64,000 bases of DNA from Eukaryota sp. TZLM1-RC (GCA_040285825.1 JAUPSS010000004.1:5857784-5921783); one strand, 5' to 3'. Counted from the first letter of the stretch, positions 5,638-52,308 are shown. Notes: a model not told the origin generated them from the sequence alone. Made by a program: numbers and translations.

Positions 5638-6984
5638 TTATGGAAAACGGCTTTGATCAATTTGTTCCAAATTGCGAAAGTTCTTGATAGACCTTCAATT
5701 TCTATATCTGGATGTATTTGGCATATTCATTTGAAATACAACAAATAAAGCCATTCAGTGGATCCTTTAAGTGTAATCAGCTCTTCAATACTGATAGCTT
5801 TTAATCACTCTGATGGATCATTCAACCTCAGATGTGGTCCTGTAGTATCATACACTGTGTTGAGCAGAAATAAAAAAAGTCTTTTTGAAAAGCAATCAAT
5901 TCACCCAAGCTTTCTGTACCACAAATTTCAGTGGTTGTTGCCATCAACGAGTTTGGCTATGTCTGTGGACATATGCAACCTGGTCATTTCAATCGTTTGC
6001 AATTCATTGGCTTTCTAAAAGATATTATACATAGAAAACGATAGAACTGAATAAAAAAATATATTTCTTGTCCTTGTTGAGTTGATCTGTGGTTTTTTAT
6101 GTGAAGTTTATTGGTTGTAAGAAAAATAATTGAAGTTTAACTAAGTATGAGAATTTTCTACGTTAGTGGCCATATCAAATTGGACAACTGCATCAGCATG
6201 TAAAACAGTAGGTATTGGAGCCGAAGATAACAACGATCTGATAAAATTCGCAATTTCAGCGTCCCTTTTAATGCGTAAAGGCTTAGCGAAACTTTCTACT
6301 ATTTCTTCATATTCTTTTGTGTTTTTCTGGATAAATTGCAAAATCTGTTCTTCTTCTTTTTGGACGTCGCTAAGTTCCAAATTACAATTTCTTAACAACT
6401 TGAATTTGAGAACAGAAGACGGAACAACTGATAAATCGTTGATTTATCAAACGAAAGTTCTTTGAAGCAGCCCCAGGCTTACCCATCAATACTAATGGTT
6501 TTTCATTCATTCCATAAAGTTTAATATTCCTTTCTTTTGCTTGGGCGATAAAGTGAGGAGTCAGAAGTAGCACCAAGTCGTCTAAAACAAGGTGTGAATA
6601 TGACTCAGCTTGTTGGATATACACATCGTGTTCCCCTTCATAAAAGAATTTATGAGTTCCCTTATACGGTGCATATAGTAAATACAATTTGAGAGCAACA
6701 CAACCATCATTATGAACAAAGGAAAAGTAAAGAGGTTGATGGCTTTGAGTACTATCAACTTCATTAAGGTGAGGGTTGACATACGGTGCTGTATGTAAAG
6801 GACTATTGACAGAAGAAAAATCAAGTTGTTGAGCACAAGACTGTCTCCAAGGGAAGTCAAAGTCTTCATCAGTGCGTGGCAATTTGATAGGGTTGCCAAA
6901 TTGTTGATCATCAGATTGTCTCCAAGGGAGGTCACAGTCTTCGTCTGTTCGTGATGAGTGTATAGTGGTGTCAATTGGTGGCAT
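5638..6984 (-). pseudogene. Disrupted gene of unknown family, paralogous to ~13000-14280
   Basis: ORFs 6382-6984 and 6141-6398 are joined by a frameshift. Downstream coding-like frame has stops. N-terminal internal repeat RTDED(C/F)D(L/F)PWRQS. Confidence 0.5.
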
Positions 6985-7029
6985 TAGGTTTGGGGGAATT
7001 GAATTTTGAATTCAGCTTAAGTATTCGTA

Positions 7030-8444
7030 TTTATTGAATTTGCACACTTGATTAAATTAAATCATAACTAATGGGACGACTATCATTAAACCAAGATATC
7101 CTCTACAAAATCTTGATTTACTTGCTGTCTAGCTAAAGCTTCTCTAATTCGATTGAAAAACCGCAGTAATCTATTAATAATGGCAAATTGAATCCGTGAA
7201 CGCCATAAAAAAATATCAAATCATTTCATTGTTTTTTCTTTCACCATTTTTTGGAAGTCATCCAAAAAAGTTTCTGCTTCAACTGATAATCTTCCATTTA
7301 TCGAAAATGGGAAAGCAATAAAAACCAGCTGTGTATTTCTATCGACATTTGCATCTTCAATTTCTTTATCATATTTTCTATGTTTTTCTTTTGCTTTAAA
7401 ATCCAGAGCAGCCACAGGATTAAGTTTTTTTCTGTGAACCAAAGTATCGTTTGCAACATTACATGAGACAAAGTCAACAATAGCTTCAGAATTATCAATC
7501 CAATCACAGTATACATCACCTCTATCATCAGAACCAAAAATTATTCAGAGAAAGTGTTTCCTTCAGCAGGGGCTCTTTGATACACGATATCCTTGCAGTT
7601 TGTGCCATATTGAAAACAGTGTCTCTAACAGCATCATGTAATGAAGAACGATAAGTTATCAATTTAGAGCAATTTAGAGCATGGCGCAAAGTGAGTTGAG
7701 GTGAATTCGAACAAATACATTTTTCTTTTGATAATAATTGGTTAATGGGAATGTTCAAATATAATCTCATTTTTGTTACAAATGCTTCATTAGTGGCACA
7801 CAATCCAAATCTTCGTGGTACAATGGTTACAAAAAGTGAAGAATCTGACGCCTTGTTTTCACAAACACCCTTTTCCAATAACAATGAGTGAAGATCTTGA
7901 TTTAAAACAGCCGAGCTGCAAATATTATTATAAAGATCTTTTCATACATTCCAGTCAATCTTTTCTGTAATGTTCGAAGAGTGTACTTCAAATTTAAAAC
8001 ATTTTTTTCTGGAATATTGCCATTGAATGATTGGGGAAAACATCGACCCCATTTTTCTACATCAATTCTTGAAATTTCTTCATTTAATGCAAAAACAGTG
8101 GAACTTTGCGTTGTCATCAATAAATCTTCCCAATCTGCAAATCTTTCGGAGAACTCAAAGATTGCATTTCTGCATCCGCCAACAAAAGCACACGAGGTAA
8201 GAATAGAAGCCTTCGTCCACCCTAAACCACCATAATGTGGACTAAGGTAAGCATGATCTGGAATTTGAAACATTTTACATCCCAGTAATTGAGACAGAAC
8301 TTTTGCACGTAACTCATTAAACTTTTGAGCCAAAGGTCTAGCGACGAGAGGATTTGTAGATCGAAATATATGATTAAAATTGGAACTAAAACACAGTCTT
8401 ATAATGGTAAATTTGATGTGTTTTTTTATATCTAAATTCATCAT
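7030..8444 (-). mobile_element. 5'-truncated CRE-like RLE non-LTR retrotransposon, family A
   Basis: Near-identical reverse complement of ~18807-20220. CCHC (CICS..HALNC), HDAVRD, EP and RGD..D RLE motifs; two frameshifts. Confidence 0.92.
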
Positions 8445-8522: not shown

Positions 8523-10073
8523 ATGGGAAAACTTTCCTCACTCCCTCCACCACCTTCTATAGTGCATGATATCAAAGGATCCCGCTCATTTGCTCTTGGA
8601 AAGATGCTCGGTGTCGGTGGGTTCGCTCGTGTCTATGAACTCACCGAAACCAAAACACGGCACAAGTACGCAGTCAAGGTCTTCGAAAAAGAAACGTTAA
8701 AAAAGGATCGTGCTCGTGAAAAACTATCTTCAGAAATACATATCCAACGTGGACTCCATCACCCCAACATCGTGTCGCTCTACAATGCATTTGAGTATGA
8801 TGACAAGGTCTATATTTTACTGGAACTTTGTCCTGGTACAACAGTACATCAATTGCTCCAACGCAGAAAGAAACTAAATGAGTATGAGGCCCGATACATT
8901 TTCAAGAAGATATTGAGTGGCGTCGTATTTCTTCACTCCCGCAATGTAATACATCGAGATCTAAAGCTCCACAACTTTTTCTTTACCACGACGTACGACA
9001 TCAAGATCGGGGACTTTGGCCTCTCAGCACAATTGGTAACAGAGTCTGAATCCCGGAAGACTATGTGTGGAACTCCAAACTATATGGCTCCAGAGATAAT
9101 TCGCCGCGCCGACGAAGGTCACTCCTTCCATGTAGACATATGGTCCCTTGGTATCATTCTCTTCACCATGTTATTTGGTAGACCACCTTTTGAGACTAAA
9201 GACCTCAAATCTACTTATCGTCGTATCACCAGCGTGGACTTTACTTTTCCCGATCTACCCAATGTGTCGGAGGAGGCTAAATCTCTTATTTCTCGCATAT
9301 TGCAAGCTGACCCTCAGTGCCGCCCGTCATTAACTGAAATAGAACTTGATCCGTGGATGCAGGGTTGGGCTCCTCTCTCCCTGTCAAGCGAAGTGTATAC
9401 GACTCCCATCACTCCAAACGACAAGAATCTCAACGAACTCGAACGTACACAATCCCCAGAACCTTCCAACCATCCTTCTGTTCCCTACGTTCTTTGCTGG
9501 ATGGATTATAGCGAGAAGTACGGTCTCGGGTACATCCTGTCTGACGGCACTGTTGGTGCTATGTTCAATGATGAGAGTAAAGCTTTTGTTACCCCAGAGT
9601 TGAAAGAACGAAATGAGTTTGCCTTTATTGACAGGAAATCTGCATCTCCTGATCAGCTTTATGATGCCACTCCTCAAATTCACTCCCTTCGGTATTGTCC
9701 TGATGATCTCAAGAAGAAAAGTAAGCTGATTATGTTGTTTGAAAAGAATCTTAGTGCCCATGTTAAAAGTCGAAACACTGTTTTTTCACATACTCGGCCA
9801 AATAGTTTTGACCAAGTGATTTATCTGAAAAGTTTTCATTGTTCTAATCGAGCAACTTCGTTTAGGCTCTCTAATAGGATACTTCAAGCTAATTTTGCAG
9901 ATCATTCTAAGATTATTGTAGATGTTGGTTGTCAAGTTTTGACCTTTTTGGATGAATCAAAACAGTGTTTAGGGTTTTCTCTAAAAAAGAAGTTGCCTTC
10001 AAACGTGGCTAAGCGACTTCGCTATTTGAAGTCCTTGTTACCAAATTTAGTATCAAGGCCTCCTTCTCAGTAA
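8523..10073 (+). CDS. PLK1: Polo-like kinase
   Basis: GVGGFARVY, HRDLKLHN, DFG, RKTMCGTPNYMAPE; polo-box WMDYSEKYGLGY and FRLSN..LQANF.DHSK. First ATG at 8523. Confidence 0.95.
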   Translation: MGKLSSLPPPPSIVHDIKGSRSFALGKMLGVGGFARVYELTETKTRHKYAVKVFEKETLKKDRAREKLSSEIHIQRGLHHPNIVSLYNAFEYDDKVYILLELCPGTTVHQLLQRRKKLNEYEARYIFKKILSGVVFLHSRNVIHRDLKLHNFFFTTTYDIKIGDFGLSAQLVTESESRKTMCGTPNYMAPEIIRRADEGHSFHVDIWSLGIILFTMLFGRPPFETKDLKSTYRRITSVDFTFPDLPNVSEEAKSLISRILQADPQCRPSLTEIELDPWMQGWAPLSLSSEVYTTPITPNDKNLNELERTQSPEPSNHPSVPYVLCWMDYSEKYGLGYILSDGTVGAMFNDESKAFVTPELKERNEFAFIDRKSASPDQLYDATPQIHSLRYCPDDLKKKSKLIMLFEKNLSAHVKSRNTVFSHTRPNSFDQVIYLKSFHCSNRATSFRLSNRILQANFADHSKIIVDVGCQVLTFLDESKQCLGFSLKKKLPSNVAKRLRYLKSLLPNLVSRPPSQ

Positions 10074-10951
10074 CGAAAATTTTGGAAGTTTTGGTTATTG
10101 AATTTTATTTATTTTTTGTACGTGTGTAATAAATTGTTTCAATTATTTTATGTTAAGAGTTTATGGTGAGTTTTAGACTTTTGTTCAGATACCATCAAGA
10201 AATTGTTTCCAAAAGTCAAGAAAAAATTCAATCGAATTACTTCCAACAAACTGAAGCTTCATAGAAAAATGATTTACCATGAACAGACCTTGCCAAACAA
10301 AAGCTGCCCAATATACATCTCCATCCATCCATTTTTCCTATAGTTGGGAATTCACAACAAATGCTATATTCCTAGGATGGGAAATCACTGAGATAGTAGT
10401 GTTGTTGTCAGTGGTGAAGTGATGATAAAGAGAATGGTATAAATTATCCAATTCCTTCGATTATTTTAACAGGAATAGTTGTCATAACATTGTCCTGCTG
10501 TTTAGTTCATTCAAGCCCCAACAACTGTGTGATTTATCATCTATGGTGTTGAACTTGTATTTTGAAGAGTTTATTACCATGATTCACTTTATTTTATTAT
10601 TATTTTTTGAATAACCAGTTCTTGATGTGATTTAGTGAGTATCAAGCAGTACACTAGTAAATTTTCCTTGATTGTTTATCTAGATATTGTGATAATCTGC
10701 TTCAGATTGCACTCCTTGAGTCAGAGGCAATCAATTTATATGGAATCACAGAAAATGGGGAGAAGAGTTTTCTAGATTCATCTACAATATTCTCAAACAT
10801 AATGTCAACGAAAAGAGTGCGCAACTGACAGAGAAGAAAAGGACAAGGAGAACAAAATTGTCTAAGAAGATAAGTGTCAATTATGATGATGCATCACGTG
10901 ATACAGATTTCCTTTTGGCCTCTTCGCTTTCCCTTTCCTCTCTTCCTTCCG

Positions 10952-12562
10952 ATGCGTCAAATAATGCCTGTTGCTGACATTTTGAAATCTCATAATCTTA
11001 CAAAATTCCTCCCGTATTCCCTACGTGGGGTTGAACGTGAAACTCTCCGTTGTCGTTCAACAGATTCGTCCCATTGTGAAATATCTTATGCACCTCATGC
11101 CCAATCACTTGGTTCTCCTCTTACCAACAAGTATTTCAAGCTTGATTTTAGTGAATCCTTGGAGGAACTAGTATCACCACCTCTCTCCTCTAATGAATGT
11201 GTCATGGAGTTCATGACCATATTGCACTCAATCCTCTCAAAGCATCACCCCGAAGACCTTTTGTGGCCTTTCTCCAGTCCTCCTGCCATTTCATCAAACC
11301 CCCCTCTTGCTAACTTTGGAACATCCCATCCAGCAAGGTTTCGTCACCTCTACAGAGAGTCATTGGAATGTAGATACCGGTCTACCAAATGCCAATTACT
11401 TGCCGGAATTCACTTTAATTTCTCTCTTTCTGAAGATCTTTTTAAATCATTGGGTGGAAACCCAACTGAAACTCGTAACAAAGTCTACATGAATTGTTAT
11501 AAAAATGTTCAACTTTATGCATGGATTATTATGCTCTTGACTGGCTCTTCACCTTATCTTCATCCCAGTTACTTTAATGACTATGAGACTAGTGCCACGT
11601 CATCACCGTCCAGCGCCACGTCAGCATCTCGTGATGTAACGTTTCCAAATGCGACATCTTTGAGGTGTAGCTATTTGGGATATCGTAACCCCAAGCATGA
11701 AGTTTTTGACCGTCCAATCAATTCAGTTTCCGATTACATTGATATGATTACGACTGCCACAACTATTGCTTATGAACCTTTTGGTCAGTGTGCTAAATAT
11801 TTGACCAATAAATTAATTCAAATTCCTGCTGAATTTTATGGAATTATTAGGCCTAAAACACTATTTAATTTAGGTAAATGTGAACCAGAAATTGAAGTGA
11901 ATTCTTGGAAAACTCCAATCTTGCTTGAACAGTCTGGTATTCAGTACCTTGAACTTAGATGCATTGATTGTCAGTTTGATTCTAGTACGGGATTGAGCTT
12001 GGAATTGTTGGATTTATTGGAAGTTTTCATGATATTTGGGTGTTTTTCGCCTGTTTCTGACTTGGATTCTGATATGATGAGAGTTTTAGAAACCTTTTTT
12101 GATGACATTTGCCTACGTGGCGGTGAGCTCTTGGACAAAAATTTGGAGATTCCCAATTTTTTGCAGGAATTAACCAATACTTCAAGAGTTAAAGAATGTG
12201 TTGAATTTTTATTGACAACTGAGTTATTACCAATCGCGCAAGTGTTGGACTTTGCTTACCAGTGTCAGCATTATGAAAATAGCATTAAATACTACATTAA
12301 TTCCTTTAGAAATAATAATTTGAAGTTTCAAAAATTTAGAGAAATTGTAGAAACTCAGTATAATGGTGACTTTACGCTATTTGGATGTCAATTAGCAAGG
12401 CAGTTCAAATCAGAATTGGACGTTGTTAAAATTAAAGAGGACTACCAAACCCATTTTGATATGGAAATTGAGAGGTCTGTCAAAGAATTTCAGTATTTGG
12501 AACAGCGTGATCCTAAGTGTTTTTCATTTGAGCAATATGTTAAAAAAATAGTTGAGGAATAA
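10952..12562 (+). CDS. gshA: Glutamate-cysteine ligase, gamma-proteobacterial GshA type
   Basis: RGVERETLR, LGSPLTN.Y.KLDFSES..ELVSP, LWPFSSP, YRE.L..RY, GIHFNFS, ATSLR.S.LGY, IQ...EFY..IRPK, GIQYLELR..D. Start ATG at 10952 or 10964. Confidence 0.9.
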   Translation: MRQIMPVADILKSHNLTKFLPYSLRGVERETLRCRSTDSSHCEISYAPHAQSLGSPLTNKYFKLDFSESLEELVSPPLSSNECVMEFMTILHSILSKHHPEDLLWPFSSPPAISSNPPLANFGTSHPARFRHLYRESLECRYRSTKCQLLAGIHFNFSLSEDLFKSLGGNPTETRNKVYMNCYKNVQLYAWIIMLLTGSSPYLHPSYFNDYETSATSSPSSATSASRDVTFPNATSLRCSYLGYRNPKHEVFDRPINSVSDYIDMITTATTIAYEPFGQCAKYLTNKLIQIPAEFYGIIRPKTLFNLGKCEPEIEVNSWKTPILLEQSGIQYLELRCIDCQFDSSTGLSLELLDLLEVFMIFGCFSPVSDLDSDMMRVLETFFDDICLRGGELLDKNLEIPNFLQELTNTSRVKECVEFLLTTELLPIAQVLDFAYQCQHYENSIKYYINSFRNNNLKFQKFREIVETQYNGDFTLFGCQLARQFKSELDVVKIKEDYQTHFDMEIERSVKEFQYLEQRDPKCFSFEQYVKKIVEE

Positions 12563-12999
12563 CTTAAATTCAGATAATTTTTATACTTTTTTCTTACGTT
12601 CTATTTATCCCTTATATTGTTGTGCAACAAATAAATTAAATTTAAATATTTGCAATCATTTAATCATTTAATCGATGAATTTCAATCTTGTATTTTTTAA
12701 AAGTTTCTTACAAAAATCGGTAAAAATATGATTTTTCGTTATAAAACATCAACAACTAAAGAAATATACAGAAATCACTTGCCGTTGAATCATAATTACA
12801 CAATTGAACTCAATGTGATCAAAGAATTATGGAACCGTCATTGTTTAATTTCTAGTAAAAATTTAATGCTATGAACTGCTCAAGAAACCAAACAAAAACA
12901 ATTAATGATGAATTTGAGTTGTCCAACTACAATACCAGCATTTTTACAATATTAGCCAATGGTGTGGAAAAGGAAGGAATAAACTAAACATTGGATGAT

Positions 13000-14280
13000 T
13001 TCTGGATGGTTTCAAAAGAATTGTTCATGTCATTTCTACATATGTGAGCTTTGGAAGTTAAAATAATCAACAGAAATAAACGTTTCATCAATAAAAACAA
13101 TTTTTTCAAAACTGAGCTTGTGATGGTTTTGTGTTGTGATCCTTCTACTCCATCAAACAACCATATACGAGATACTCTAGTAGTGTTAGAATTGGAAAAT
13201 ATTTGTAGCTTTATTACATGTGTAATCTTATCCTTCACAGACCATCAGCAGAAAGGTTGCGGTAAGAGCAATTGAAAGCTTAAAAAACTAATTCTGTATA
13301 CATGTTTTTCATTTTAGACTTTGCCAAGTTGCCTTTGGATTAATTTCAATCTGGATTGGATGATTTGGTTGGTGAAAAATGTATTCAGTGATTTCCTCAA
13401 AATGTTCAAAAAATTCCAAACTGTTTGAGACGACTTGATGCCATTTTTGAAGCCTCATCTGATCTCCCATGCAAAAATAGAAGTGCTAAACTTTATGGAA
13501 TAAATGAGAAACAACTGGTGCTGATTGGGGGGCTGTTTAAAAAAACTTTCCTGCTATTGATAATACAGCCTTTCCAAAATATATAAAGAACACTATCGCT
13601 CCGTATTTTCGTGTAAGTATACATTGGTTAAAATTTTCCTCTTATAGTGATTAAACGTTTCATACAGAAGAGCACACATCAACGCATCAAGATGAAGATA
13701 TTATGTTTACATGGTTTCTTTGTGGTATGTTTGGTTATCTGTATTATTTTTACTAGTTCAATTACAAATTATATATCTAAATAAAATAATTTTAAAAATT
13801 GAAACAGTTCGCCGCTGTGGAATTATTTAGACGCGGTGAATACTAGTAGTAAAATTGACGATTAGTCCATCCTGCGTGATCAAACAGTGAACTTTCCAAA
13901 TCAGATAGTATTTGAGTTGTAGATGCTTCTGGAAAACGGGAAGATTCAATTCTCACACGTCGTTGTGACAGTCCAAAAAAGGCTTCCACTGGATTCGATT
14001 CGGGTGAACATGGTCGTAATGCAGACCCACCTTACGAACTGCAATCTCATCTGGACATTTGGGAATGTCATAGCGGTCCATTACGAGTCTTTATCCAATA
14101 ATCTCCTTCAGGAAGTGTGGTACGGAAACCTTTCATAAATTAATGATGACCAGTTTTCCAATAGGAAACCAGACACATCGTTGGTGTCAGTGCTTACGAA
14201 CAAAAGAGATGTCTGGAGCCTTCTGAACAATGCAAACTAAGTTATAGAAGCCGTGGAACTGATTCCTGAAAGTAAGTGAA
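13000..14280 (+). pseudogene. Degenerate paralog of the 5638-6984 unknown gene
   Basis: Shares DDL..(F/L)L.PH.I..AK...KLYG.NEK.LVL.G (~13430-13530) and NN...(V/L)WY..L..I...FS.R (~14095-14165). Boundaries approximate. Confidence 0.45.
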
Positions 14281-14324
14281 AAGTCAACATCATATGGTTT
14301 GGAAATTGGGAATGTTGTTTTTAT

Positions 14325-15022
14325 ATTTATTGAACATGAACACTTAATTAAATTAATTCATTACTGATGGGACGAATATCATTGAACCAAGATTTCCTCT
14401 ACAAAATCTTGATCTGCCTGCTGTCTAGCTAAAGCTTCTTTTATTCGATGGAAAAACGGAGGTAATCTATCAATAATGGCGAATTGAATTCGAGAACGCC
14501 ATGAAAAATATCAAATCTTTTCATTGTTGTTTCTTGAACCATTTTTTGGAAGTCATTCAAATGAGTTTCTGCTTCATTTGATAATCTTCCATTTATCGAA
14601 AATGGGAAAGCAATAAAAACCATTTGTGTATTTCTATTAGCATTAGCCTCTTCATTATCTTTATCATATTTTCAACGTTTTTCTTTTGCTTTAAAATCAA
14701 GAGTACTCACAGGATTAAGTTTTCTTCTGTGAACAAAAGTATCATTTGCAACATTACATGGGACAAAATCAACAATAGCTTCAGAATTATCAATCCAATC
14801 ACAGTATACATCACCTCTATCATCAGAGCCAAAATTATTCAAAGAAAGTGTTTCCTTCAGCAGAGGCTCTTTGAAACACGATATTCTTGCAGTTTGTGCC
14901 ATATTGAAAACAGTGTCTCTAACAGCATCATGTAATGAAGAACGATAAGTTATCAATTTAGAACATTTCAGAGCATGGTGCACAGTGAGTTGGGATGAAT
15001 TCTAACAAATACATTTTTCTTT
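14325..15022 (-). mobile_element. 3' fragment of CRE-like non-LTR family A
   Basis: ORFs 14672-14983 and 14441-14623 match the family A C-terminus and 3' UTR. Confidence 0.9.
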
Positions 15023-18479: not shown

Positions 18480-20220
18480 ATTGCAAATTCAGGAGATGTT
18501 TCCTTCGCTAAAAAATGATTGCATATATGGATGATGTTGTGCTTAGTGGTGATTTAAATATTGTCAGAGAAGCAACTGGATTTTTTAAAGAATTATTTAC
18601 CAAAATTGGCCTTCAACTTAATTTACTTAAATGTGTTTTGTTATCGAATTCTCCAGTTTCCACAATAATTGATGATATTGAAATTCAAGCCAAATTATAT
18701 TCAATTGATGCTATTCGTCATTTGGGTTCATTTTTAGGAAATAATGATGAAATTACCAAAAAATTGTTTGAAAAGTTGAAATCAATTTCTGAAAAAATTG
18801 ACCGAATGATGAATTTAGATATACAAAAAAACATCAAATTTACCATTATAAGACTGTGTTTTAGTTCCAACTTCAATCATATATTTCGATCTACAAATCC
18901 TCGTGTCACTAGACCTTTGGCTCAAAAGTTTAATGAGTTACGTGCAAAAGTTCTGTCTCAATTACTGGGATGTAAAATGTTTCAAATTCCAGATCATGCT
19001 TACCGTAGTCCACATTATGGTGGTTTAGGGTGGACGAAGGCTTCTATTCTTACCTCGTGTGCTTTTGTTGGTGGATGCACAAATGCAATCTTTGAGTTTT
19101 CCGAAAGATTTGCAGATTGGGAAGATTTATTGATGACAACGCAAAGTTCCACTGTTTTTGCATTAAATGAAGAAATTTCAAGAATTGATGTAGAAAAATG
19201 GGGTCGATGTTTTCCCCAATCATTCAATGGCAATATTCCAGAAAAAAATGTTTTAAATTTGAAGTATACTCTTCGAACATTACAGAAAAGATTGACTGGA
19301 ATGTATGAAAAAGATCTTTATAATAATATTTGCAGCTCGGCTGTTTTAAATCAAGATCTTCACTCATTGTTATTGGAAAAGGGTGTTTGTGAAAACAAGG
19401 TGTCAGATTCTTCACTTTTTGTAACCATTGTACCACGAAGATTTGGATTGTGTGCTACTAATGAAGCATTTGTAACAAAAATGAGATTATATTTGAACAT
19501 CCCCATTAACCAATTATTATCAAAAGAAAAATGTATTTGTTCGAATTCACCTCAACTCACTTTGCGCCATGCTCTAAATTGCTCTAAATTGATAACTTAT
19601 CGTTCTTCATTACATGATGCTGTTAGAGACACTGTTTTCAATATGGCACAAACTGCAAAGATATCGTGTATCAAAGAGCCCCTGCTGAAAGAAACACTTT
19701 CTCTGAATAATTTTGGTTCTGATGATAGAGGTGATGTATACTGTGATTGGATTGATAATTCTGAAGCTATTGTTGACTTTGTCTCATGTAATGTTGCAAA
19801 CGATACTTTGGTTCACAGAAGAAAACTTAATCCTGTGGCTGCTCTGGATTTTAAAGCAAAAGAAAAACATAGAAAATATGATAAAGAAATTGAAGATGCA
19901 AATATCGATAGAAATACACAGCTGGTTTTTATTGCTTTCCCATTTTCGATAAATGGAAGATTATCAGTTGAAGCAGAAACTTTTTTGGATGACTTCCAAA
20001 AAATGGTGAAAGAAAAAACAATGAAAAGATTTGATATTTTTTTATGGCGTTCACGGATTCAATTTGCCATTATTAATAGATTACCGCGGTATTTCAATCG
20101 AATTAGAGAAGCTTTAGCTAGACAGCAAGCAAATCAAGATTTTGTAGAGGAAATCTTGGTTTAATGATAGTCGTCCCATTAGTTATGATTTAATTTAATC
20201 AAGTGTGCAAATTCAATAAA
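18480..20220 (+). mobile_element. 5'-truncated CRE-like non-LTR family A copy with intact 549-aa RT-C/RLE ORF (18515-20164)
   Basis: YMDD, GLQLN..KC, HLG, GGLG, CCHC, HDAVRD, EP, RGD..D. Ends at CAATAAAT. Confidence 0.93.
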
Positions 20221-21289
20221 TTAATTATAATTTGCCTAGTGATATCTGGATTCAGTGTTTGCTCAAAATGTTCAACAAATTCCCAACAGATCACTTCCAA
20301 ATTTACGTTTTTATCTGAAGAAACTTCAGTACCATTTGGTTAAACTAGATGAGAGCTTGGATTTTGAAGTAAGACTTGGCTTGGCCAAAACTGAAAATCC
20401 CGTTTTCGGAAATTGTTTAAAGGACATTCGTAATAGTTCTGCTGCTGCTTAAGTAACTTAAATTCCTTCTGTTTATGACCTTTTGTTAAAAAACAATGAA
20501 TGGCTTTTAAACGTGCGTTTTCGATGTTTTCTATGGCCAAGCAATTTGCCCAATCATGTAACATGTAAATGTAGTAAACTCCTTTTGTTTACTCATCTTT
20601 TGAACTGTAAACATTTCATTACATTTAGAAATAAAGTGCATAATAATGTTAGGGACCAAATTTATGTAATGTACAAATCATATCGAATAGATTCCTTTTT
20701 AGAACCGCTGTTATCAAAATTAATTCTTGATGATCCCAACATTGATAGTACGCGTTACAACAGAGCTTCTATGGGTCTGACATGAGGTTATTTGGTTGTT
20801 CTCGGCATGAATGGTAGTTTTACTATTTTAGACGCCATGTCTATTGACCCTTGTAATTCCTCTAACGAACATCTCATTAATTCGGATGTAAATAATCCTC
20901 TTCTTGCAGGCGAAAAATATAAAATTGCTAAATATGCGAAACCCATTTCCTCGGTTAATGAAAATTCGCATGCCAAATATAATTTATGTCCCTTTGTTTT
21001 TTCTTTGCTTGGATCTCTAGCTATGGCTGCTATGGGTTTTCTTGAGGATTTTGTTGTAGTTGTAAAGAAAAGAACTGGAAGAAATTTCAATCGTGTTTAC
21101 AGGCAAAACAGGATTGTATTTTCTATTTTTAAGGGAATGGAAAAACTAATTTCTGATTCAGTCTGTTCTTTTGGGAATTTTTTTGAATCTTTAGCACTTA
21201 ATTCTTTTGATGTAAGGGAGGCAGGTTTTGAGGATGTGGAGTTTGAGTTGTGTATTTTATGTATTCATGTTTCTTGTTAAATGAATATA

Positions 21290-23380: not shown

Positions 23381-23691
23381 AGAAATTTGTGAAATGTATT
23401 GTAGGAGTAAGTCAAAACGCAGATGTGCATTTGGATGGAAATTCAAAATAAGTTAATAAGTCGTTTCAACATTTGTATTGTGGTTGTTTAAGCAGGGAGT
23501 GTTCAGGCGTAATTTTAAAGTTTTTAAATCCAGTTTATTATATTGTTAAATTCCAAAATTATTATATTATAAAAAAATCTTCAAAAATCTGATCAAAAAC
23601 AAATGTACTGGCTTTCATCAATATTGACTCTTTAGCAAAAATAATGCTTTAAAACAAAAATTTATTTCTAAACAAAAAATTTACAATAGGT

Positions 23692-25199: not shown

Positions 25200-25460
25200 A
25201 TATTTATTGAACATGCACACTTAATTCAATTAATTCATAACTAATGGGACGAATATCATTGAACCAAGATTTTCTCTACAAAATCTTGATCTGCTTGCTG
25301 TCTAGCTAACATTTCTCTTATTCGATTGAAAAACGGAGGTAATCTACTAATAATGGCAAATTGAATCCGAGAACGCCATAAAAAAATGTCAAATCTTTTC
25401 ATTGTTTTTTATTGAACCATTGTTTGGAAGTCATTCAAAATAATTTCTACTTCATCTTTT
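25200..25460 (-). mobile_element. 3' tail of non-LTR family A
   Basis: Matches ~19970-20220. Confidence 0.85.
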
Positions 25461-27111: not shown

Positions 27112-28165
27112 AATAATCTTCCATTTATCGAAAATGGGAAAGCAATAAAAACTAGCTGTGTATTTCCATCAGCATTAACTTTTTCAATATCATTTTCATA
27201 TTTTCTATGATTTTCTTTTGCTTTAAAATCAAGAGCACTCACAGGATTAAGTTTTCTTCTGTGAACCAAAGTATCATTTGCAACATTACACGAGACAAAA
27301 TCAACAATAACTTCAGAATTATCAGTCCAATCACAGTAAACATCACCTCTATCATCAAAACCAAAATTATTCAAAAAAATTGTTTCCTTCAGCAGAGGCT
27401 CTTTGATACACGATATTCTTGCAGTTTGTGCCATATTGAAAACAGTGTCTCTAACAGAATCATGTAATGAAGAACGATAAGTTATCAATTTACAGCAATT
27501 CAGAGCATGGTGAAAAGTGAGTTGTGTTGTACTGTGGACAATAAGTCTAGTATAGACTTCACTAGTGATGGCCTTTATAAGGGCCAGTGAATTTTAAATC
27601 AATATTCTTTATCCCGCTTTATTGTTTCACATGACACAAACAGCATCAGTTGAGGTGAATTCGAACATTTTTCTTTTGATAATAATTGATTAATGGGGAT
27701 ATTCAAATATAATCTCATTTTTGTTACAAATGCTTCATTAGTGTCACACAATCCAAATCTTCGTGGTACAATGGTTACAAAAAGTGAAGAATCTGATGAC
27801 TTATTTTCACAAACACCCTTTTTCAATAACAATAAGTGAAGATCTTGATTTAAAACAGCCGACCTGCATACATTATTATAAAGTTCATTTTCATACAATC
27901 CAGTCAATCGTTTCTGTAATGTTCGAAGAGTGTATTTTAAATTTAACAAATTCTTTTCTGGAATATTGCCATTGAATGATTGGGGAAAGCTTTGACTCCA
28001 TTTTTCTACATCAATTTTTGAAATTTCTTCATTTACTGCAAAAACAGTGGAACTTTGCGTTGCCATCAATAAATCTTCCCAATCTGCAAATCTTTCGGAA
28101 AACTCAAAGATTGCATTTCTGCATCCACCAAAAAGCACACGAAGTAAGAATAGAAGCCTTCGTGG
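27112..28165 (-). mobile_element. Internal fragment of non-LTR family A carrying a solo-LTR insertion
   Basis: ORFs 27599-28231 and 26901-27488 match family A. Confidence 0.9.
27525..27648. mobile_element. 124-bp insertion, probable solo LTR (TG...CA, 4-bp TSD GTTG)
   Basis: Other family A copies read GTGAGTTGAGGTG. Here GTTG is duplicated around TGTTG...CATCA. AATAAA on the minus strand. Confidence 0.75.
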
Positions 28166-38514: not shown

Positions 38515-40065
38515 AATATTTATTAAGCTTGCACACTGAACAAAATAAACTCAGAACTAATGGGACTAAATTCATTGAACCAAGATTTCCTCTACGAAAT
38601 CTTGATTTGCTTGCTGTCTAGCTAAAGCATCTCTTATTCGATTGAAAAACCGAGGTAATCTATTAATAATGGCAAATTGAATTCGAGAGCGCCATAAAAA
38701 GATATCAAATCTTTTCATTTTTTCCTGAACCATTTTTTGGAAACCATTCAAAAAAAATCCTGCTTCAACTGAGAATCTTTCGTTTATCGAAAATGGAAGA
38801 GCAATAAAAACAAGAGATCTATTTCTATCAGCATTAGCTTTTTCGATATCTTTGTCATATTTTCTATGTTTTTCTTGGGCCTTCAATTGGAAAGCACCTA
38901 CAGGATTAAATTTTCTTCTTTGAACCAAAGTGTCATTTGCAACATCACATGAGACCAAGTCAACAACAGCTTCAGAGTTCTCAATCCAATCACAATATAT
39001 ATCACCTCTATCAGAACTAAAATTATTCAGAAAAAGTGTTTCCTTCAGCAGAAGCTAGTTGATACACGATATTGTTGCAGTTTGTGCCATATTGAGAACA
39101 GTGTCTCTAACAGCATCATGTAATAAAGAACGATAAGTTATCAATTTAGAACAATTCGGAGCATGGTGCAAAATAAGTTGAGGTGAATTCGAACAAATAC
39201 ATTTTTCTTTTGATAATAATTGATTAATGGGAATATTCAAATATAATCTGATTTTTATTACAAAGGCTTCATTCGTGGCACACAATCCAAATCTTCGTGG
39301 CACAAAGGTCACAAACAGTGAAGAATCTGATGACTGATTTTCACAAACGCCCTTTTCCAATAACAATGAGTGGAGATCTTGATATGAAACAGCCGAGTTG
39401 CATTTATTTTTATAAAGCTCATTTTCATACATTCCAGTCAATCGTTTCTGTAATGTTCGAAGAGTGTATTTTAAATTTTGATAATTCTGTTCTGGAATAT
39501 TGCCATTGAATGATTGGGGAAAGCATCGACCCCATTTATCTGCATCAATTTTTGAAAATTTCCTCATTGAATGCAAAAACAGTAGAACTTTGCGTTGTCA
39601 TTAATTAATCTTCCCAATCTGCAAATCTTTCAGAAAACTCAAATATTGCATTTCTGCATCCACCTATAAAAGCACAAGAAGTAAGAATTGAGGCATTTGT
39701 CCAGCCTAAACCGCCATAATATGGACTAAGATAAGAATGGTCTGGAATTTGGAATATTTTACATCCTATTAATTGGAACAACACTTTTGCATGTAATTCA
39801 TTGAACTTCTGGGCCAAAGGCCTAGAGATGAGGGGATTTGTAGATCGAATTATATGATTAAAGTTGGAATTGGAACAAAGTCTTATAATGGTAAATTTGA
39901 TATGTTTTTGTACATCATATTTCATCATTTGGTCAATTTTGTCGGAAATGGTTTTCTTTATTGATCTTGCCCACTTAACAAAATATACTCATAACTTATG
40001 GGACGAAATTCATTGAAACAAGATTTCCTCTACAAAATCTTGATCTGCTTGCTGTCTAACTAAAG
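38515..40065 (-). mobile_element. 5'-truncated non-LTR family A copy plus an extra short A tail (~39985-40065)
   Basis: ORFs 39605-39928, 39055-39576 and 38572-38958 match family A. Confidence 0.9.
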
Positions 40066-44679: not shown

Positions 44680-46115
44680 AGAATAAAATCATTACTGATG
44701 AGACCAAAATCATTGAACCAGGATTTTCTATATACAATCTTGATCTGCTTGATGTTTCTGTTTGATTGTCGTTTTGAAAATAAATAATTTTTTTTAAAAA
44801 AAGCTTGATGTCTAGCTAAAGCTTCTCTGATTCGATTGAAAAACCGAAACAATGTATTAATAATGGCAAATTGAATTCGGGAGCGCCATAAAAAGATAGG
44901 AAATCTTTTCATTGTTTTTTCCTGAACCATCTTTTAAAAGTCGTTCAAAAAAGTTCCTGCTTCAACTGATAGTCTTCCGTATATCGAAAGTGGAAAAACA
45001 ATAAAAACAAGAGGTTTACTTCTATCAGCATTAGCTTCTTCAATATCTTTGTCATATTTTCTATGTTTTTCTTGGGCCTTAAGTTGGAAAGCACCTACAG
45101 AATTAAGTTTTCTTCTTTAAACCCAAGTGTCATTTGCAACATTACATGCGAAAAAGTCAACAACAGCTTCAGAGTTCTCAATTTGATCACAATATATATC
45201 ATCTTTATCATCAGAACCAAAATTATTCAATGGGAGTGTTTCCTTCAGCAGAGGCTCTTTGATACACGATATTCTTGCAGTTTGTGCCATATTGAAAACA
45301 GTGTCTCCAACAGCATCATGTAATGAAGAACGATAAGTTATCAACTTAGAACAATTCAGAGCATGGCGCAAAGTGAGTTGAGGTGAATTCGGACAAATAC
45401 ATTTTTCTTTTGATAATAATTGATTTATGGGGATATTCAAATATAATCTCATTTTTGTTACAAATGCTTCATTAGTGGCACACAATCCAAATCTTCGTGG
45501 CACAATGGTCACAAACAGTGAAAAATTTGATGACTGATTTTCACAAACACCATTTTCCAATATCAATGAGTGGAAATCTTGATTTAAAACAGCCGAACTG
45601 CATATATTTTTATAAAGATCATTTTCATACATTCTAGTCAGTCGTTTTTGTAATGTTCGAAGAGTGTATTTTAAATTTAAATAATTCGTTTCTGGAATAA
45701 TGCCATTGAATGATTGGGGAAAGCATCGGCTCCATTTTTCTACATCAAATTTTGAAAATTTCCTCATTTAATGCAAAAATGGTAGAACTTTGCGTTGTCA
45801 TCAATAAATCATCCCAATCTGCAAATCTTTCGGAAAACTCAAAGATTGCATTTCTGCATCCACCGATAACAGCACAAAAAGTAAGAATTGAGGCCTTTGT
45901 CCAACCTAAACCGCGATAATGTGGACTAAGAAAAGCATGATCAGGAATTTTGAACATTTTACATCCTAGTAATTGTGATAAAACTTTTGCACGTAATTCA
46001 TTGAACTTCTGGGCCAAAGGCCTAGAGATGAGTAGATGTAGATCGAAATATATGATTAAAATTGGAATTGAAACAAAGTCTTATAATGGTAAATTTGATG
46101 TGTTTTTGTGCATCC
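44680..46115 (-). mobile_element. 5'-truncated non-LTR family A copy with a displaced tail fragment
   Basis: ORFs 45745-46017, 45117-45767 and 44667-44930 match family A. Confidence 0.9.
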
Positions 46116-46631: not shown

Positions 46632-47178
46632 CAACCATATATGGGGGTATTGGATAAATATAAATTTGTTGCAATCTGCCAGATACTGTGAATTTCTATC
46701 AAAACGCACTTCTGGCTTTTGACCAATTCATGCAATCCTGATAGACGTTAAGCTTACTTTAGTTCTATCACTATATGATATCACGATCAAATGATAGTTA
46801 AAGCAGCAAAATCACAATACGCGTACAGGTACGCAATACATGGAAAAGCACTTATCTATGGGGTCTCCGGAACGCCTCAGGTCTTTCATTGTAGTAGTGC
46901 TCACTTATGGCAATCTCCAGTTGGTTTCTGGAAGCTGAGATGTCCCTCGACCAGAGTGTCTGACATTGAGGGCATACAAACTTATCATTGTTCACCCTCC
47001 CATCATCGTGACCATCATCGTTTCCTTTTCAAGAAAGAAAATAGTTGAGGCAGCTTGAGTATCACGTATTGAAGTGTTTAATTATCATTTTGCTGATGTT
47101 TTATCTTTTTATAGATATAAGAAGTTGTTAATAAATGAAATTTTATTGACCGTCTGATCTTTTCTTGACTGACATTCC

Positions 47179-47532
47179 TTGGCTAATGGAAGAGAAGCCA
47201 TAATTTGGTTTGGTAGTGAAGGTGATGGGCCATCAAGACAAGCTGTGAAAACCCCCAGGAAGCGCTTTTTGAAGGAGATTCAGAAACATTTTACATATGT
47301 GAAGCCTAATGGAGATAAATTCTACACATCTGCCAAAACGAATTGCTGTAAGGTATTCAATCAAAAGTTGTATGACGATGATGGGAGGGTGAACAATGAT
47401 AAGTTTGTATGCCCTAAATGTCAGACACTCTGGTCGAGGGACATCTCAGCTTCCAGAACCCAACTGGAGATTGCCATAAGTGAGCACTACTACAATGAAA
47501 GACCTGAGGCGTTCCGGAGACCCCGTAAATAA
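47179..47532 (+). pseudogene. C-terminal remnant of a Fanzor/TnpB-like RuvC nuclease (family B)
   Basis: IIWFG; DKFYTSAKTNCC (RuvC-II/Zn half); CPKCQTLWSRDISASR (Zn half and RuvC-III Asp); RPEAFRR tail typical of Fanzor1. RuvC-I and the N-terminus are absent. Confidence 0.8.
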
Positions 47533-47698
47533 GTGCTTTTCGATGAAATGCGTACCTGTACGCGTATTGTGATGTTGCTGCTTTAACTATCATTTGATCG
47601 TGATATCATATAGTGATAGAACTAAAGTAAGCTTAACGTCTATCAAGATTACATGGATTGGTCAAAAGGCAGAGGTGCGTTTTGATAGAAATTCACAA
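47533..47698 (+). ncRNA. Putative omega-RNA scaffold of Fanzor family B (mirror copy ~46686-46851 on the minus strand)
   Basis: Lies between the nuclease stop codon and the element end. Hairpins GCGTAC/GTACGC, CTATCA/TGATAG inside a longer stem, and a terminal TG(G/A)ATT..GTCAAAA/TTTTGAT..AATTCA stem. Confidence 0.6.
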
Positions 47699-47779
47699 TA
47701 CTAACATCATAACCAGGGATAACTCAAGTGATAAAGTACTTTAATTCCATATTTTGGACCACTTTAGCCATCCCTGATC

Positions 47780-48088
47780 ATGACCATTACACACACAGTA
47801 CCTCTTGTCTCTTCAGGATCAGAGCTGGAATATCTATGTATTGAATTACAGGGCTTTTTAGAGACTCATCTCTCTGAGTCTGAGCTTCAAGGTGTTTCAG
47901 TGGGCAACATCACATTTGAAACAGAAGATACCGCTTATCTCGTCATAGGAAACCACAGGTTATCTGGGAAACTTTCGCCTCTGCCAAAGCCAAGACTTGT
48001 GTTAGAAAAACAGGACGGTCAAGTCATGGTACGAGGTTTCATAAAGAAAGTGTTGAGGTTCAACACACGCCCTTCTTTGATAGTGTAG
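47780..48088 (+). CDS. CTF8: Chromosome transmission fidelity protein 8
   Basis: IELQG.LE, VG.I.F, L.IG.H.L.GK...L.KP.LVLEK, V.G.IKK.L.F.TRP. Confidence 0.85.
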   Translation: MTITHTVPLVSSGSELEYLCIELQGFLETHLSESELQGVSVGNITFETEDTAYLVIGNHRLSGKLSPLPKPRLVLEKQDGQVMVRGFIKKVLRFNTRPSLIV

Positions 48089-48769
48089 ATTGTTTGGTTT
48101 TGTCATTGTTCCCACCACTGTTTTCTTGTTTATTATTCTTATTACAGTATGATTGATTCTTGATGTGCAAGTCATTAGGGTTTTAATTAGTGTAAAAAAT
48201 AATTTAATTAATTTAATTTGAAGTTTACTGTGTTTTTTTGTGTTTAATTGCTTTTGAAATCTCAAATTTAATTTGATAACTGAAGACTTAAATTTTCTTT
48301 TCACTGGTGTAGAATTGATTTTGTCATCTGGTCTTTAGAGTTTTCAGGTCTTTGCCAACATTTGCTTCAAAATTTCGTAGTAGGATTTTACAAGTTTTTC
48401 TAATAATTCAATGAAACCCAGACACAATTTCGAATTCCAATAGCCATAATGAATAGATTTCTTTGGTTCTTTCATCGATTAATAGGAGCAATGGCGAGAA
48501 AACAAGCATACCAGGGTTTTGTGGGAAAAGTCCTGGTTCATTGAATTTAGTCCCATTAGTTGTGATTAGTTCATTAAGTGTTGTAGTTCAATAAAACGTT
48601 TATCGGATACAAGTTGAAATCAATAATTACCATGAGAAAACTCTAAAGCTATGACTTGTCTTGTGTTATTTTATCGTGTTGATTACAATTATTATTCCAA
48701 GATTAAGATAAAACTCAGTGCTTAATGGTGAAACAAAATAATTACACCTCTTTCACCAATTATCTGACT

Positions 48770-49867
48770 ATGCTCTTCTTCCTCTTTTCAACCTCTGATT
48801 GCAATCTCAGATGTACCTATTGTGGTAATCGTCCCATAGAAGACCTTATGCCTGCCAAACCCACTGTCTCCATAGATTCATTAACAAGATTTATTAAAAC
48901 TAGTCCAGATAACGAAAACACTATAGTTTTTTATGGTGGGGAACCTCTCCTCAATACTTCTTTTGTACGCTCTGTTATGGATACCATGACTACAAGGTTT
49001 GTCCTTCAAACTAATGGCACTCTCCTCCACAAGTTGGATACTCCCTATCTGTCTCGCTTAGATGCTATCCTTGTATCTATAGATGGAATCAAAGACGTAG
49101 TAGACCAGTGGAGGGGCAATTTCACCTATGACAAAGTTATGAAACAAGTGCTTTCTCTTCGATCTCGAGGTTTCACTGGTGATCTCATCGCCCGAATGAC
49201 CATTAGCAAGGATGCTGATATTTACCGTGATGTTATGCATCTGCTAGACCACAGTGCTGGTTTTGACCACATTCATTGGCAGATTGATTGTCAGTGGGAT
49301 TCACCAATGGAAGAGATTCGTCCGGATTTCAAGGAATGGGTTGAGGAGTACAATAAGGGCATTACTAGGCTAATGGAGGTTTGGATTGAGCGAATGAAGA
49401 AAGGTGTTGTTTGTGGAATTGTTCCATTTTTAGGAATCGTCAGGACTCTCTTGACTAACGTGGACTACTCTACAGTGGGTCTACAGTGCGGCATTGGTCA
49501 TTCTTCTTTTACCATTGGAACAAGGGGAAATGTTTTGGGTTGTCCCGTAAGTTGGGAAGATGATTGGAACATGATTGGTATGATTGACCAACTTGATTGC
49601 AATCAGTTACGTGAGAAGCTACATCTTTCTGAACCTTGTACCAGTTGCGCTGATCTACCTGTTTGTGGAGGACGCTGTCTGTACGCCAATAAGACGAAGT
49701 GGTGGGGGATGGAAGGATTTGATATGGTTTGTAGTACAGTACGGCATCTGATTAGTGAGTGTAAACGTGTGTTGCCGGTTATTAATGATTTGATTGAGCA
49801 GGGGGTAGTTTCAGAAGAAGTATTTCATTATGATGCTTGTAATAATTCAATGGAAGTTATTCCTTAA
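48770..49867 (+). CDS. Radical SAM/SPASM enzyme resembling the archaeal AF0577 (TIGR04084) family
   Basis: CNLRCTYC, FYGGEPLLN, QTNGTLL, SIDG, LIARMT, HWQID; SPASM CG.G...GCPV..C..C....CGGRCLYAN..C; C-terminal EVIP. Confidence 0.85.
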   Translation: MLFFLFSTSDCNLRCTYCGNRPIEDLMPAKPTVSIDSLTRFIKTSPDNENTIVFYGGEPLLNTSFVRSVMDTMTTRFVLQTNGTLLHKLDTPYLSRLDAILVSIDGIKDVVDQWRGNFTYDKVMKQVLSLRSRGFTGDLIARMTISKDADIYRDVMHLLDHSAGFDHIHWQIDCQWDSPMEEIRPDFKEWVEEYNKGITRLMEVWIERMKKGVVCGIVPFLGIVRTLLTNVDYSTVGLQCGIGHSSFTIGTRGNVLGCPVSWEDDWNMIGMIDQLDCNQLREKLHLSEPCTSCADLPVCGGRCLYANKTKWWGMEGFDMVCSTVRHLISECKRVLPVINDLIEQGVVSEEVFHYDACNNSMEVIP

Positions 49868-50019: not shown

Positions 50020-51970
50020 TCAAAAAACTACAAAAATTTTTCAATTTGGATTTATTCTGTATCACGTTCTTCCATTTTGCCTTTGCTGCGAAAGCATTTT
50101 CCTGAAGTTGAGTCTTTTTTCTATTCATTTTATGGAAAAAAATCAACATTGGTCTATGAAAACTTTGACCTGCTTTCGTCTTCAGGTGTTAAACAAGGTG
50201 ATCCACTTGGTCCTTTTTTAAGTTGTCTGGCAATTCATCCATTAATGTGCGAATTGAAAGAAAAATTCCCAGAAATAGATATTGTAGCATATATGGATGA
50301 CATTTCTGTAATTGCTCCTATTAAAACAAATAGCATCAAACAAATAGCATCTTTTATTCAACAGCGTTATGAAGATATTGGTCTCTCATTGAATATCTCC
50401 AAATGTTTGATTATTGGCCATGAACCAATTTATTTTTTCATTAATGATGTCAATGTCCCCTTTATCAATTATGATCAGTCTGGTTTTCGTTTTTTGGGTT
50501 GTTATCTCGGAAATATTGAAGAAGTCAAAAGCCAACTTTCGACTCTGTTGACTCAATTTGGAAATGAATTAGCATCAATAGAAAATTGAAATATTGAGAA
50601 ACATTTGAAATTATTTTTCCTAAAAATTTGTTATTCTGGAAGATTTACTCATATTTTGAGATCAACATCACCATCAATTTCTTTGGCGTTTTGTCGAATT
50701 TTTAATGAACAAAGAACCAATTTTTTAACAAAATTATTGGAAATTGATGCATCTCAGTTACGAAGCCACATTTTTTGTGGTACAAATTTTGGTGGTGTTG
50801 ATTTTCATAAATCAAGCTATCTTTGTAAAGTTGCCTTTATTGGAGGTGGTAAAAATCTTATTTATGAATTTGTGAATCGCTTTTCAGATAAAATTGATCT
50901 CATTGAAAACTGTGGCAGCTCTTATCTTATTTCTTTGCAACAGGAAATTGAAACTCTTTCACCAAATATTTGGTCTAAATATTTGCCCTCTGATATTGTG
51001 GAGCTTCCTCCAAGAAGCTTGCTTTCCTTACCACTGACTTTTGCAAAATTGCAGAAAAAAATCTTGAAAGTTTTAGAAAACTTGGATTATATTGTACGTC
51101 TTAGCTTGGCTAAAGAAAAAAATCCCGTTTTTGCAAACTTTTTGATTGATCTTGAAGACAGTTGCTCAAGTTGCCTAATCTTCCAAATTCCCAACAATTA
51201 TGGCCTTCTACTCAATGATCACCAATGGACCACTGCAATGAGAATGAGATGTTTTCTATGGCCTTGTTCTTTACCAAATGATTTAATTTGTCGCTGCAAG
51301 AGTGTTGTTACGCTTTCCCATATTTTAAACTGTAAGTATTTTATAACTTATCGCTCAATTGTTCATGACTCAGTTCGTGATCAATTATATGCCATGTGCA
51401 GAAGTTTCAATATAAAGGCATTTATTGAGCCATTAGTACGTAGGCTGTCTTCAGATCAAACTGATGATTCCTTTGGTAAAAGAAGGGCAGATTTAGTAGC
51501 TCCAGGGATCGATGGTGTTCTCAATGTTGTGGATTTTGTCTCAGTTGATGTCTGCAAAAATTCGGCTGCTGGTTTGGTGTATTCCGCTGATTCGCCGTTA
51601 TCTAACGCCGAAAAAAAGAAGATAAAAAAATATGAAGAACCTTTGGCACAGTTAGGTAGAGTGGAACATGTGAAATATCAGTTTGTGCCGTTTGCAATTT
51701 CTCTTTTAGGCAATATTGGACCTTTAGGGTTACACTTTTTTTGAAAATTTTAAGAAAGTGTTACTGAATAGGTCTGGTAAAACAATGAACTCCATTTTCT
51801 GGTTAAATAGAATTGTTGTTTGCATTTTCAAGTCTATTCCATCAATGATTTCAAAGGCACTTTTAGCTATTGGTGTAGAATATGAACGTAATGCTGTGAG
51901 TAGGTTTAGTAATAGTGACGCTTGTTTGGAGGATATTGAATTCTAGCTAGATTTTTTTTCTCAATAAAAA
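50020..51970 (+). mobile_element. 5'-truncated CRE-like non-LTR family C copy (RT + RLE)
   Basis: GVKQGDPLGP, YMDD, GLSLN.SKC, FLG; CRC..HILNC, HDSVRD, EP, RRAD..D. Confidence 0.92.
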
Positions 51971-51999
51971 TTCAAATGTAAATGAAAAAAAATTGGATT

Positions 52000-52175
52000 T
52001 GCAATTCATCAAAATCTCGAATTCAATTTGTCATTATTAATAGATTGCCTCTGTTTTTCAATCGAATTAGAGAATCCTTAGCAAGACAGCAAGCAGATCA
52101 AGATTTTGTAGAGGAAATGTTGGTTTAATGAATTTCGTCCCATTAGTTATGAGTCAAGTGTGCAAGATTAAAAAA
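52000..52175 (+). mobile_element. 3' tail of non-LTR family A
   Basis: SRIQF.IINRLP..FNRIRE.LARQQA.QDFVEE plus the A-type 3' UTR. Confidence 0.85.
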
Positions 52176-52308
52176 TATTATTTTGTTTTAAATCCATACT
52201 TTTGAATTCCAAAATTCAAAATACCTAAAGAAATATTTAAAGATTTCCAGCAATATTTACTGAAATTCCCGAATTCCACTGTATGGAATTTAAAGGTATG
52301 TCTAAATC

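Follow-up and report, generated by a model that had tools for sequence, protein, structure and literature searches.

Inverted Fanzor1 right ends in a metamonad genome are probably the remnant of two head-to-head insertions

A 1,013-bp unit (46686-47698), near 5.90 Mb of contig JAUPSS010000004.1 in the genome of isolate TZLM1-RC, described as the metamonad Skoliomonas litria (PMC11603281), is most probably a one-off, non-functional remnant of two copies of a Fanzor1 transposon family, here called family B, that lie head to head between divergent host genes. Coordinates without a locus name are those of the window, the whole stretch of 64,000 nucleotides that was analysed. Fanzor1 proteins are RNA-guided nucleases, eukaryotic homologues of TnpB, such as SpuFz1 of Spizellomyces punctatus (PMC3627910, PMC10530073). 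The unit carries no transposase, its long inverted arms come from one and the same terminus, and what remains of it mimics long terminal inverted repeats.

The inverted repeat is 326 nt long, with arms at 46684-47009 and 47375-47700 that are 96% complementary (14 mismatches, no gaps) and separated by a gap of 365 nt. The terminal 38-mer of the arms has two sites in the window, one in each arm, against none expected by chance. The left arm (46686-47009, minus strand) is the inverted 3'-terminal 324 nt of a family-B Fanzor1 element and consists of the last ~52 codons of the gene (46852-47009) and an omegaRNA-like tail (46686-46851), both on the minus strand; the right arm (47375-47698, plus strand) is that part of a longer right copy which the left arm mirrors. 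Both arms keep the entire tail and the conserved terminus, each tail ending in GAAATTCACA(G/A) followed by TA. On the left this TA (46684-46685) may be flank or the element's last two bases and does not demonstrate a target-site duplication, and on the right (47699-47700) an independent public contig of 151 nt (47657-47806) spans the junction between element and flank with 0 differences. The flanks outside the unit read ...CTGCCAGA on the left and CTAACATC... on the right, and would be joined by TA in a hypothetical empty site; no such site was found in the short contigs of the three public DNA runs, from one sample, that cover the locus. The same short contigs revealed other family-B copies and exact homology breakpoints. 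In one such copy homology to the left arm stops exactly at 46684, and by this comparison the left arm's outer edge is a true terminus of the element.

The right copy contains the last 117 codons of a family-B Fanzor1 (47180-47532, plus strand), from RuvC-II to RuvC-III and the zinc ribbon, with ...FVCPKCQTLWSRDISASRTQLEIAISEHYYNERPEAFRRPRK as its last residues, and the left arm encodes the same final ~52 residues on the opposite strand. Both arm ORFs end in the TnpB/Fanzor-type motif CPxCQTLWSRDISASR[N/T]QLEIAISEHYYNERPEAFRRP, the arms differing at the Asn that follows RuvC-III, and the arm fragment has the combination of C-terminal zinc ribbon and RuvC-III (CxxC...RDxxAxxN) that characterises TnpB and Fanzor proteins. 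The Pfam family PF07282 (Cas12f1-like TNB) matches the 117-aa right ORF with E=9.9e-6 and 26.1 bits, just below the gathering score of 26.3, and the left-arm peptide with E=0.0017; the relatives P0009 and P0011 and window family A lie above the gathering score. The sequence-only reading had made its identification of the peptide depend on a TnpB/Fanzor HMM match, and PF07282 is found in both arms. Given the inverted repeat, the Fanzor frame, the PF07282 match and the folded tail described below, its description of ~324-bp outward-facing inverted arms, each with a Fanzor C-terminus and an omegaRNA-like right end, is correct. The inverted repeat is real, and it is made of the tail ends of a Fanzor transposon.

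The frame is also visibly decayed. On the right it extends 65 codons past the arm into what had been taken for spacer (47180-47374), and there the RuvC-II Glu has become Lys through a G>A change at 47317 that is private to the right copy. The part encoding RuvC-I has been deleted from the unit, the left arm begins after RuvC-II, and there is no Met codon in frame in the ORF of either arm, so that nowhere in the unit does one intact ORF hold a complete RuvC D/E/D triad. The earlier statement that the unit lacks a working nuclease stands. Judged from this decay only, the unit as a whole would be non-functional.

Identification of the parent as a Fanzor1 draws on a large set of relatives. More than 40 annotated Fanzor1 protein clusters were seen in the S. 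litria genome (GCA_040285825.1), some with many near-identical copies (P0026 with 18 members, P0038 with 28), and S. litria and two sister isolates together encode dozens of related proteins, the longest of 775 aa. Beyond these three isolates almost nothing turned up among the 1.84 billion representative proteins searched: there were 15 matches in total, and all those for which a source was shown came from the three. When 12 full-length relatives were aligned, the RuvC-II Glu, the RuvC-III Arg-Asp and the four zinc-ribbon cysteines were invariant, and the family alignment conserves the D/E/D and CCCC columns, as Fanzor1 proteins do. The family profile, searched against the PDB, matches the RuvC-III motif of the TnpB-like nuclease LaTranC (E=0.008), and a PDB sequence search with P0033 alone returned nothing meaningful. 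We also used an AlphaFold model of P0026, a protein with ~70% identity to family B in the C-terminal ~100 residues that the two have in common. The model is of moderate confidence (pLDDT 67.9), and in a Foldseek search of the PDB its best seven matches were SpuFz, PpFz and GtFz (E 1.3e-8 to 1.2e-4), Fanzor1 structures that it matches ahead of Cas12j, Cas12f and TnpB; the modelled relative thus has an overall fold like that of solved Fanzor1 nucleases. The conserved alignment, the RuvC-III profile match and the Fanzor1-like model justify the name Fanzor for the arms. Like known Fanzor1 elements, the family has a single ORF in an element of ~2.3-2.6 kb, a structured non-coding tail that runs from the ORF to the right end, and many degraded copies. 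It differs from them in its host, a metamonad, and from Fanzor1 SPu-1 in that its end-to-end copies have neither 33-bp terminal inverted repeats nor TA duplications; the present locus differs further, being two terminal fragments and no gene. We conclude that the parent of family B is a new metamonad member of Fanzor1. In the collection of papers searched, no publication treats Fanzor together with metamonads.

Family B has at least 11 annotated members with 89-92% protein identity (P0002, P0033-35, P0044-48 and fragments). We read six other loci of the family, four of which (L005, L006, L010 and L011) hold end-to-end copies of ~2.3 kb or more and so supply the full-length copy elsewhere in the genome for which the sequence-only reading had called. 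L007 is 5'-truncated, and L001 is 5'-truncated and has in addition a 237-bp internal deletion at a GTCA microhomology. L005, the sole end-to-end copy whose frame was checked, is a pseudogene: it carries frameshifts, and its RuvC-I Asp is gone (ATNH in place of AIDPNH). A candidate propagating mini-element was also considered, suggested by four 118-aa proteins (P0003, P0004, P0005 and P0023) with the same Met start as the remnant ORF, and rejected: at L008 there is a frameshifted full-length copy of another family. Three further observations concern the ends and 5' parts of these elements. In L010 a ~950-bp insertion (1287-2232) splits the 5' non-coding region of the family-B copy, L005 2656-2751 and 2747-3000 mapping on either side of it. 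At ~1180-1215 of the same locus the left part of family B starts directly after the right-end motif of another element (...TTGGAATTCACAG, then GATGG...), a junction that hints at elements stacking behind each other's right ends, or at a right-end motif that resembles the target or TAM. Within the window, a solo 40-nt piece at 23411-23450 (GTCAAAACGCAGATGTGCATTTGGATGGAAATTCAAAATA) is 85% identical to the family-B terminus, has no Fanzor ORF nearby, and is probably the relic of a right end.

Comparison with these copies shows that the rest of the spacer is element-derived too, and the unit is therefore not just two arms and neutral filler. Directly after the left arm comes an internal piece of the family-B 5' non-coding region (47021-47176, plus strand, corresponding to L005 2836/2840-2990), namely the ~155 bp that immediately precede the start codon; from 47021/26 to 47176 it is 82.6-85.3% identical to the 5' region of the four end-to-end copies. 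The claim that the element has no left end has to be given up in that form. What the unit does lack is the true left terminus, at least 100-360 bp farther out: homology among the full copies runs at least 100 bp farther (~360 bp in L005 and L011), this outer left part of family B was found nowhere in the 64-kb window, and the inverted left arm occupies its place. The 5' homology and a breakpoint at 47180 show the right half to be more than a bare right end: it is a copy clipped at its 5' side and deleted internally. Exactly at 47180, L001 and public contigs of other copies (97% identical) cease to match the window, and upstream of this point they read on in frame (...MGFIEKIKL-MANGRE). The junction itself (47177-47180, plus strand) marks the loss of ~1.56 kb, the Fanzor gene being gone from its start codon as far as codon ~490. 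A short ATGGC match that the start codon shares with an internal Met codon would suit a microhomology deletion.

The second junction (47010-47025) lies where the left arm meets the 5' piece. Here CCATCATCGT at 47000-47009 is repeated at 47012-47021 after GA, and this 10-nt templated direct repeat (47000-47021) is best read as an end-joining scar. With the 5' piece, the duplicated CCATCATCGT means that the unit includes left-side element sequence and two repair junctions, one with a templated insertion and the other compatible with microhomology, as end joining leaves at novel junctions. Inverted repeats and palindromes are known to suffer deletions of their centres, and templated insertions of the polymerase-theta type occur at end-joining junctions. 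The unit resembles the first in its asymmetric loss around a head-to-head centre and the second in the templated direct repeat; from the scar only, end joining would be the pathway that sealed it.

The tail of the right copy (47533-47698, plus strand) is 166 nt of omegaRNA-like non-coding sequence, predicted to fold into a long-range stem in which GTGCTTTTC pairs with the terminal GAAATTCAC and encloses hairpins. It folds moderately better than shuffled controls (z=-2.06); covariation among 5 copies gave no support for the predicted structure, and a search of Rfam gave no match. Between the arms, 10 of 166 sites have changed in the tail versus 4 of 158 in the coding part, and two private changes of the right arm disrupt predicted base pairs of the tail. 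These comparisons give no sign that either arm is under selection.

Fanzor guide RNAs overlap the right end, or right inverted repeat, of the element and read into the flank (PMC10530073), and either arm could therefore in principle yield an RNA with a flank guide. On this basis the sequence-only reading had proposed a TA-bounded element of the TIR MITE kind that could make two omegaRNAs guided by its two flanks, a trans-acting Fanzor then cutting the empty allele from both sides. Such an element would be functional and non-autonomous, mobilised as a unit and protected by that Fanzor. The complete tails and conserved termini of both arms agree with this, the right half retains ~155 bp from before the former start codon as a candidate promoter, and the genome does hold many-copy Fanzor families related to this one (the P0026 and P0038 clusters). 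The left arm, however, lacks a promoter upstream, conservation is lower in the tail than in the coding part and predicted tail pairs have been lost, the unit has repair scars and an internal 5' fragment inside it, and the cognate nuclease copies inspected are all pseudogenes or fragments, with no intact one found. We give this reading a very low probability. A flank guide would be within the potential of every Fanzor right end, and the pairing of two here suggests no more than an accident of position.

The distribution of the structure weighs against it as well. MITEs and foldback-type derivatives of DNA transposons can have two arms that derive from one end, and the unit is like them in its small size, its long inverted arms from one terminus and its lack of a transposase. 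It is unlike them in that amplification is not in evidence, no target-site duplication is demonstrated, repair scars lie inside the unit and parental 5' sequence forms an asymmetric spacer, and in having a parent family without terminal inverted repeats. No inverted second arm is present at any of the six other family-B loci, and the inner junctions of the unit occur in no public contig; within these loci and contigs no second copy of it was found. In the four end-to-end copies the left and right parts are unlike each other, no inverted self-match was found at BLAST sensitivity, and no TA precedes the left part; nothing thus suggests a transposase that recognises inverted termini of family B. 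In window family A, searches for terminal inverted repeats gave only short, chance-level matches. As for the TA on both sides of the unit, TA follows 5 of 8 family-B right ends and also the end of family A (55189), and is missing at the remaining three (AA at L006, TT at L007, a mutated terminus at L010). Occurring as it does at single right ends, TA is probably a property of the right end or its preferred target, not a duplication made by the whole unit. Nor is a designed or selected architecture supported: the 10-nt duplication is templated, the arms are as diverged as other copies, and tail pairs are broken. Our comparisons bring no evidence that the whole unit has moved or that either tail serves as guide RNA.

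What the right ends do share is their position. The annotated minus-strand gene P0043, for which no homologues were found within the length range searched, has its ATG (46631) 55 bp downstream of the left-arm terminus (46686), and the right-arm terminus (47698) lies 82 bp upstream of a Ctf8-like plus-strand ORF that begins at 47780. In 9 of the 10 Fanzor right ends read, from several families, the end lies 10-82 bp upstream of a host start codon on the same strand, the exception being L002. The pairs of right end and start codon are 5074 and 5084 in L005, ~4208 and 4232 in L007, 4601 and 4648 in L001, ~3493 and 3514 in L008, ~4563 and 4615 in L010, 4020 and 4101 in L011, and 55189 and 55231 for window family A, in addition to the two arms (46686 and 46631 on the minus strand; 47698 and 47780). 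This placement suggests either that insertion is targeted to the 5' ends of genes or that right ends are co-opted as promoter or 5' UTR. Targeting, as far as about 10 loci can tell, would bring insertions to the front of start codons, and if insertions are drawn to such sites or tolerated there, two divergent genes that share a short promoter would collect head-to-head elements, in the geometry that this locus shows.

The surroundings of the unit hold several other features. The Ctf8-like ORF (47780-48088) has a Pfam match of E=3.5e-4 and 21.4 bits, against a gathering score of 22, and is missing from the gene calls of the public annotation. Beyond it, among eukaryotic genes, is an intronless ORF of the radical SAM/SPASM type (48725-49867; 365 aa and PF04055 in the NCBI annotation) that is possibly derived from a prokaryote. 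A repeat of ~550 bp, 84-86% identical to L005 1424-1976, is present in at least nine copies on both strands of the window (4770-5110, 7018-7574, 14325-14868, 19677-20225, 25202-25453, 27113-27400, 38518-39057, 44803-45256 and 51987-52176), and is likely the 3' part of retrotransposons, of which reverse transcriptase fragments are seen at 50077-50589 and in L001.

We infer the number and order of the events that produced the unit as follows. Two ordinary insertions would have come first, each oriented with the adjacent gene and with its right end tens of base pairs upstream of the host start codon; the second copy may have hopped locally from the first. One deletion over the head-to-head centre would then have taken at least ~2 kb of the left copy and, from the right copy, its outer left part, and end joining would have closed the gap, leaving the templated duplication. 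The ~1.56-kb loss inside the right copy would be a separate deletion of microhomology type. Against this, two insertions of the same family in one short intergenic region are improbable unless they were targeted or local.

We aligned both arms with five complete family-B right ends to examine their relationship. The copies form a star-like family in which any two differ at 12-24 sites; the arms, which differ at 15 in this alignment, fall within this range and are thus not recent copies of each other. Private changes number 9 in the right arm and 2 in the left, and at sites that differ between the arms the copies in public contigs mostly agree with the left arm, which looks the younger of the two. 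The state at column 164 is common to both arms only, that at column 258 to both arms and L011 only, and one site is common to the right arm and L010. By these states the arms may marginally be each other's closest relatives. The shared states at columns 164 and 258 would fit a local hop, and also duplication in a single event.

In such a single-event origin, one internally deleted family-B copy would have stood upstream of the Ctf8-like gene, and aberrant transposition or break repair would have made from it an inverted fragment of 324 nt, by a template switch, by a strand switch in one-ended or rolling-circle-like copying, or by a local hop from the same copy; its product would be just as dead and non-mobile. 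With private changes removed the arms are marginally nearest relatives, and a templated duplication at the junction is typical of polymerase-driven repair. From Chlamydomonas, 5'-truncated Fanzor1 copies have been described that are ascribed to one-ended transposition (PMC3627910), and another inverted duplication that bears a Fanzor is present in the S. litria genome, at L004. We nevertheless judge this origin unlikely. The left arm stops at the canonical terminus, in the canonical position before a host ATG, as a normal insertion would and a fold-back would not, and its exact terminus argues for insertion over random segmental duplication. One of the shared sites ties the right arm to L010 instead, and the private changes, which should be equal in number, stand at 9 versus 2 (small counts, p about 0.07). 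The L004 structure (JAUPSS010000004.1, 2.686-2.708 Mb) is a ~5-kb inverted segmental duplication of ~100% identity (~2787-7936 and 9393-14547) with a spacer of 1,456 bp, which carries a whole P0006-type Fanzor and a WD40 gene and has a third, partial inverted copy (1-1357 versus 4069-5421); either it arose very recently or conversion maintains it. We rejected it as a model for the precursor of the unit. Its arms extend past the Fanzor end into host genes, which marks it as a segmental duplication and as different in kind.

The arm differences also bear on whether the unit could be an artefact of assembly, long reads having folded back into a chimera. No independent contig covers the inner junctions (47009/47010 and 47176-47180), which would agree with an artefact. 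Fold-backs yield identical arms, however, and the 14 differences here match states found in other genomic copies; the spacer is asymmetric and consists of element sequence, the right junction recurs without a difference in an independent contig, and the locus lies deep within a 6.9-Mb contig. Together, the shared-state differences, the asymmetric spacer and the confirmed right junction make an artefact very unlikely.

For the remnants of family B, the closest described parallel comes from Chlamydomonas, in 5'-truncated, 3'-complete Fanzor1 copies (CRe-1, CRe-2 and CRe-3, non-autonomous Helitron2) that are ascribed to one-ended transposition (PMC3627910). The family-B remnants resemble these copies in that right ends are intact and 5' parts gone, in both arms as in L001 and L007, and in having no terminal inverted repeats and a subterminal hairpin before the 3' terminus. 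Unlike the Chlamydomonas copies, the Skoliomonas families showed no target duplications of variable length and no termini of the Helitron type (5'-TC, CTRR-3').

The locus itself is an ordinary decay product. An element with two outward guides would have been a new route of self-protection for an RNA-guided transposon, and the evidence points to products of decay instead. We think it highly improbable, too, that head-to-head right ends are a recurrent, selected arrangement in Skoliomonas and the unit a working two-sided module; if they were, the right end would be retained for transcription or for a guide into the 5' end of the host gene, and the unit would provide two outward omegaRNAs or a bidirectional promoter, not debris. 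The more interesting lead is the placement of right ends just before host start codons, a pattern that accounts for head-to-head pairs in divergent promoters. Behind it stands a large, diverse and apparently unreported population of Fanzor1 elements in a metamonad, with relatives in two sister isolates.
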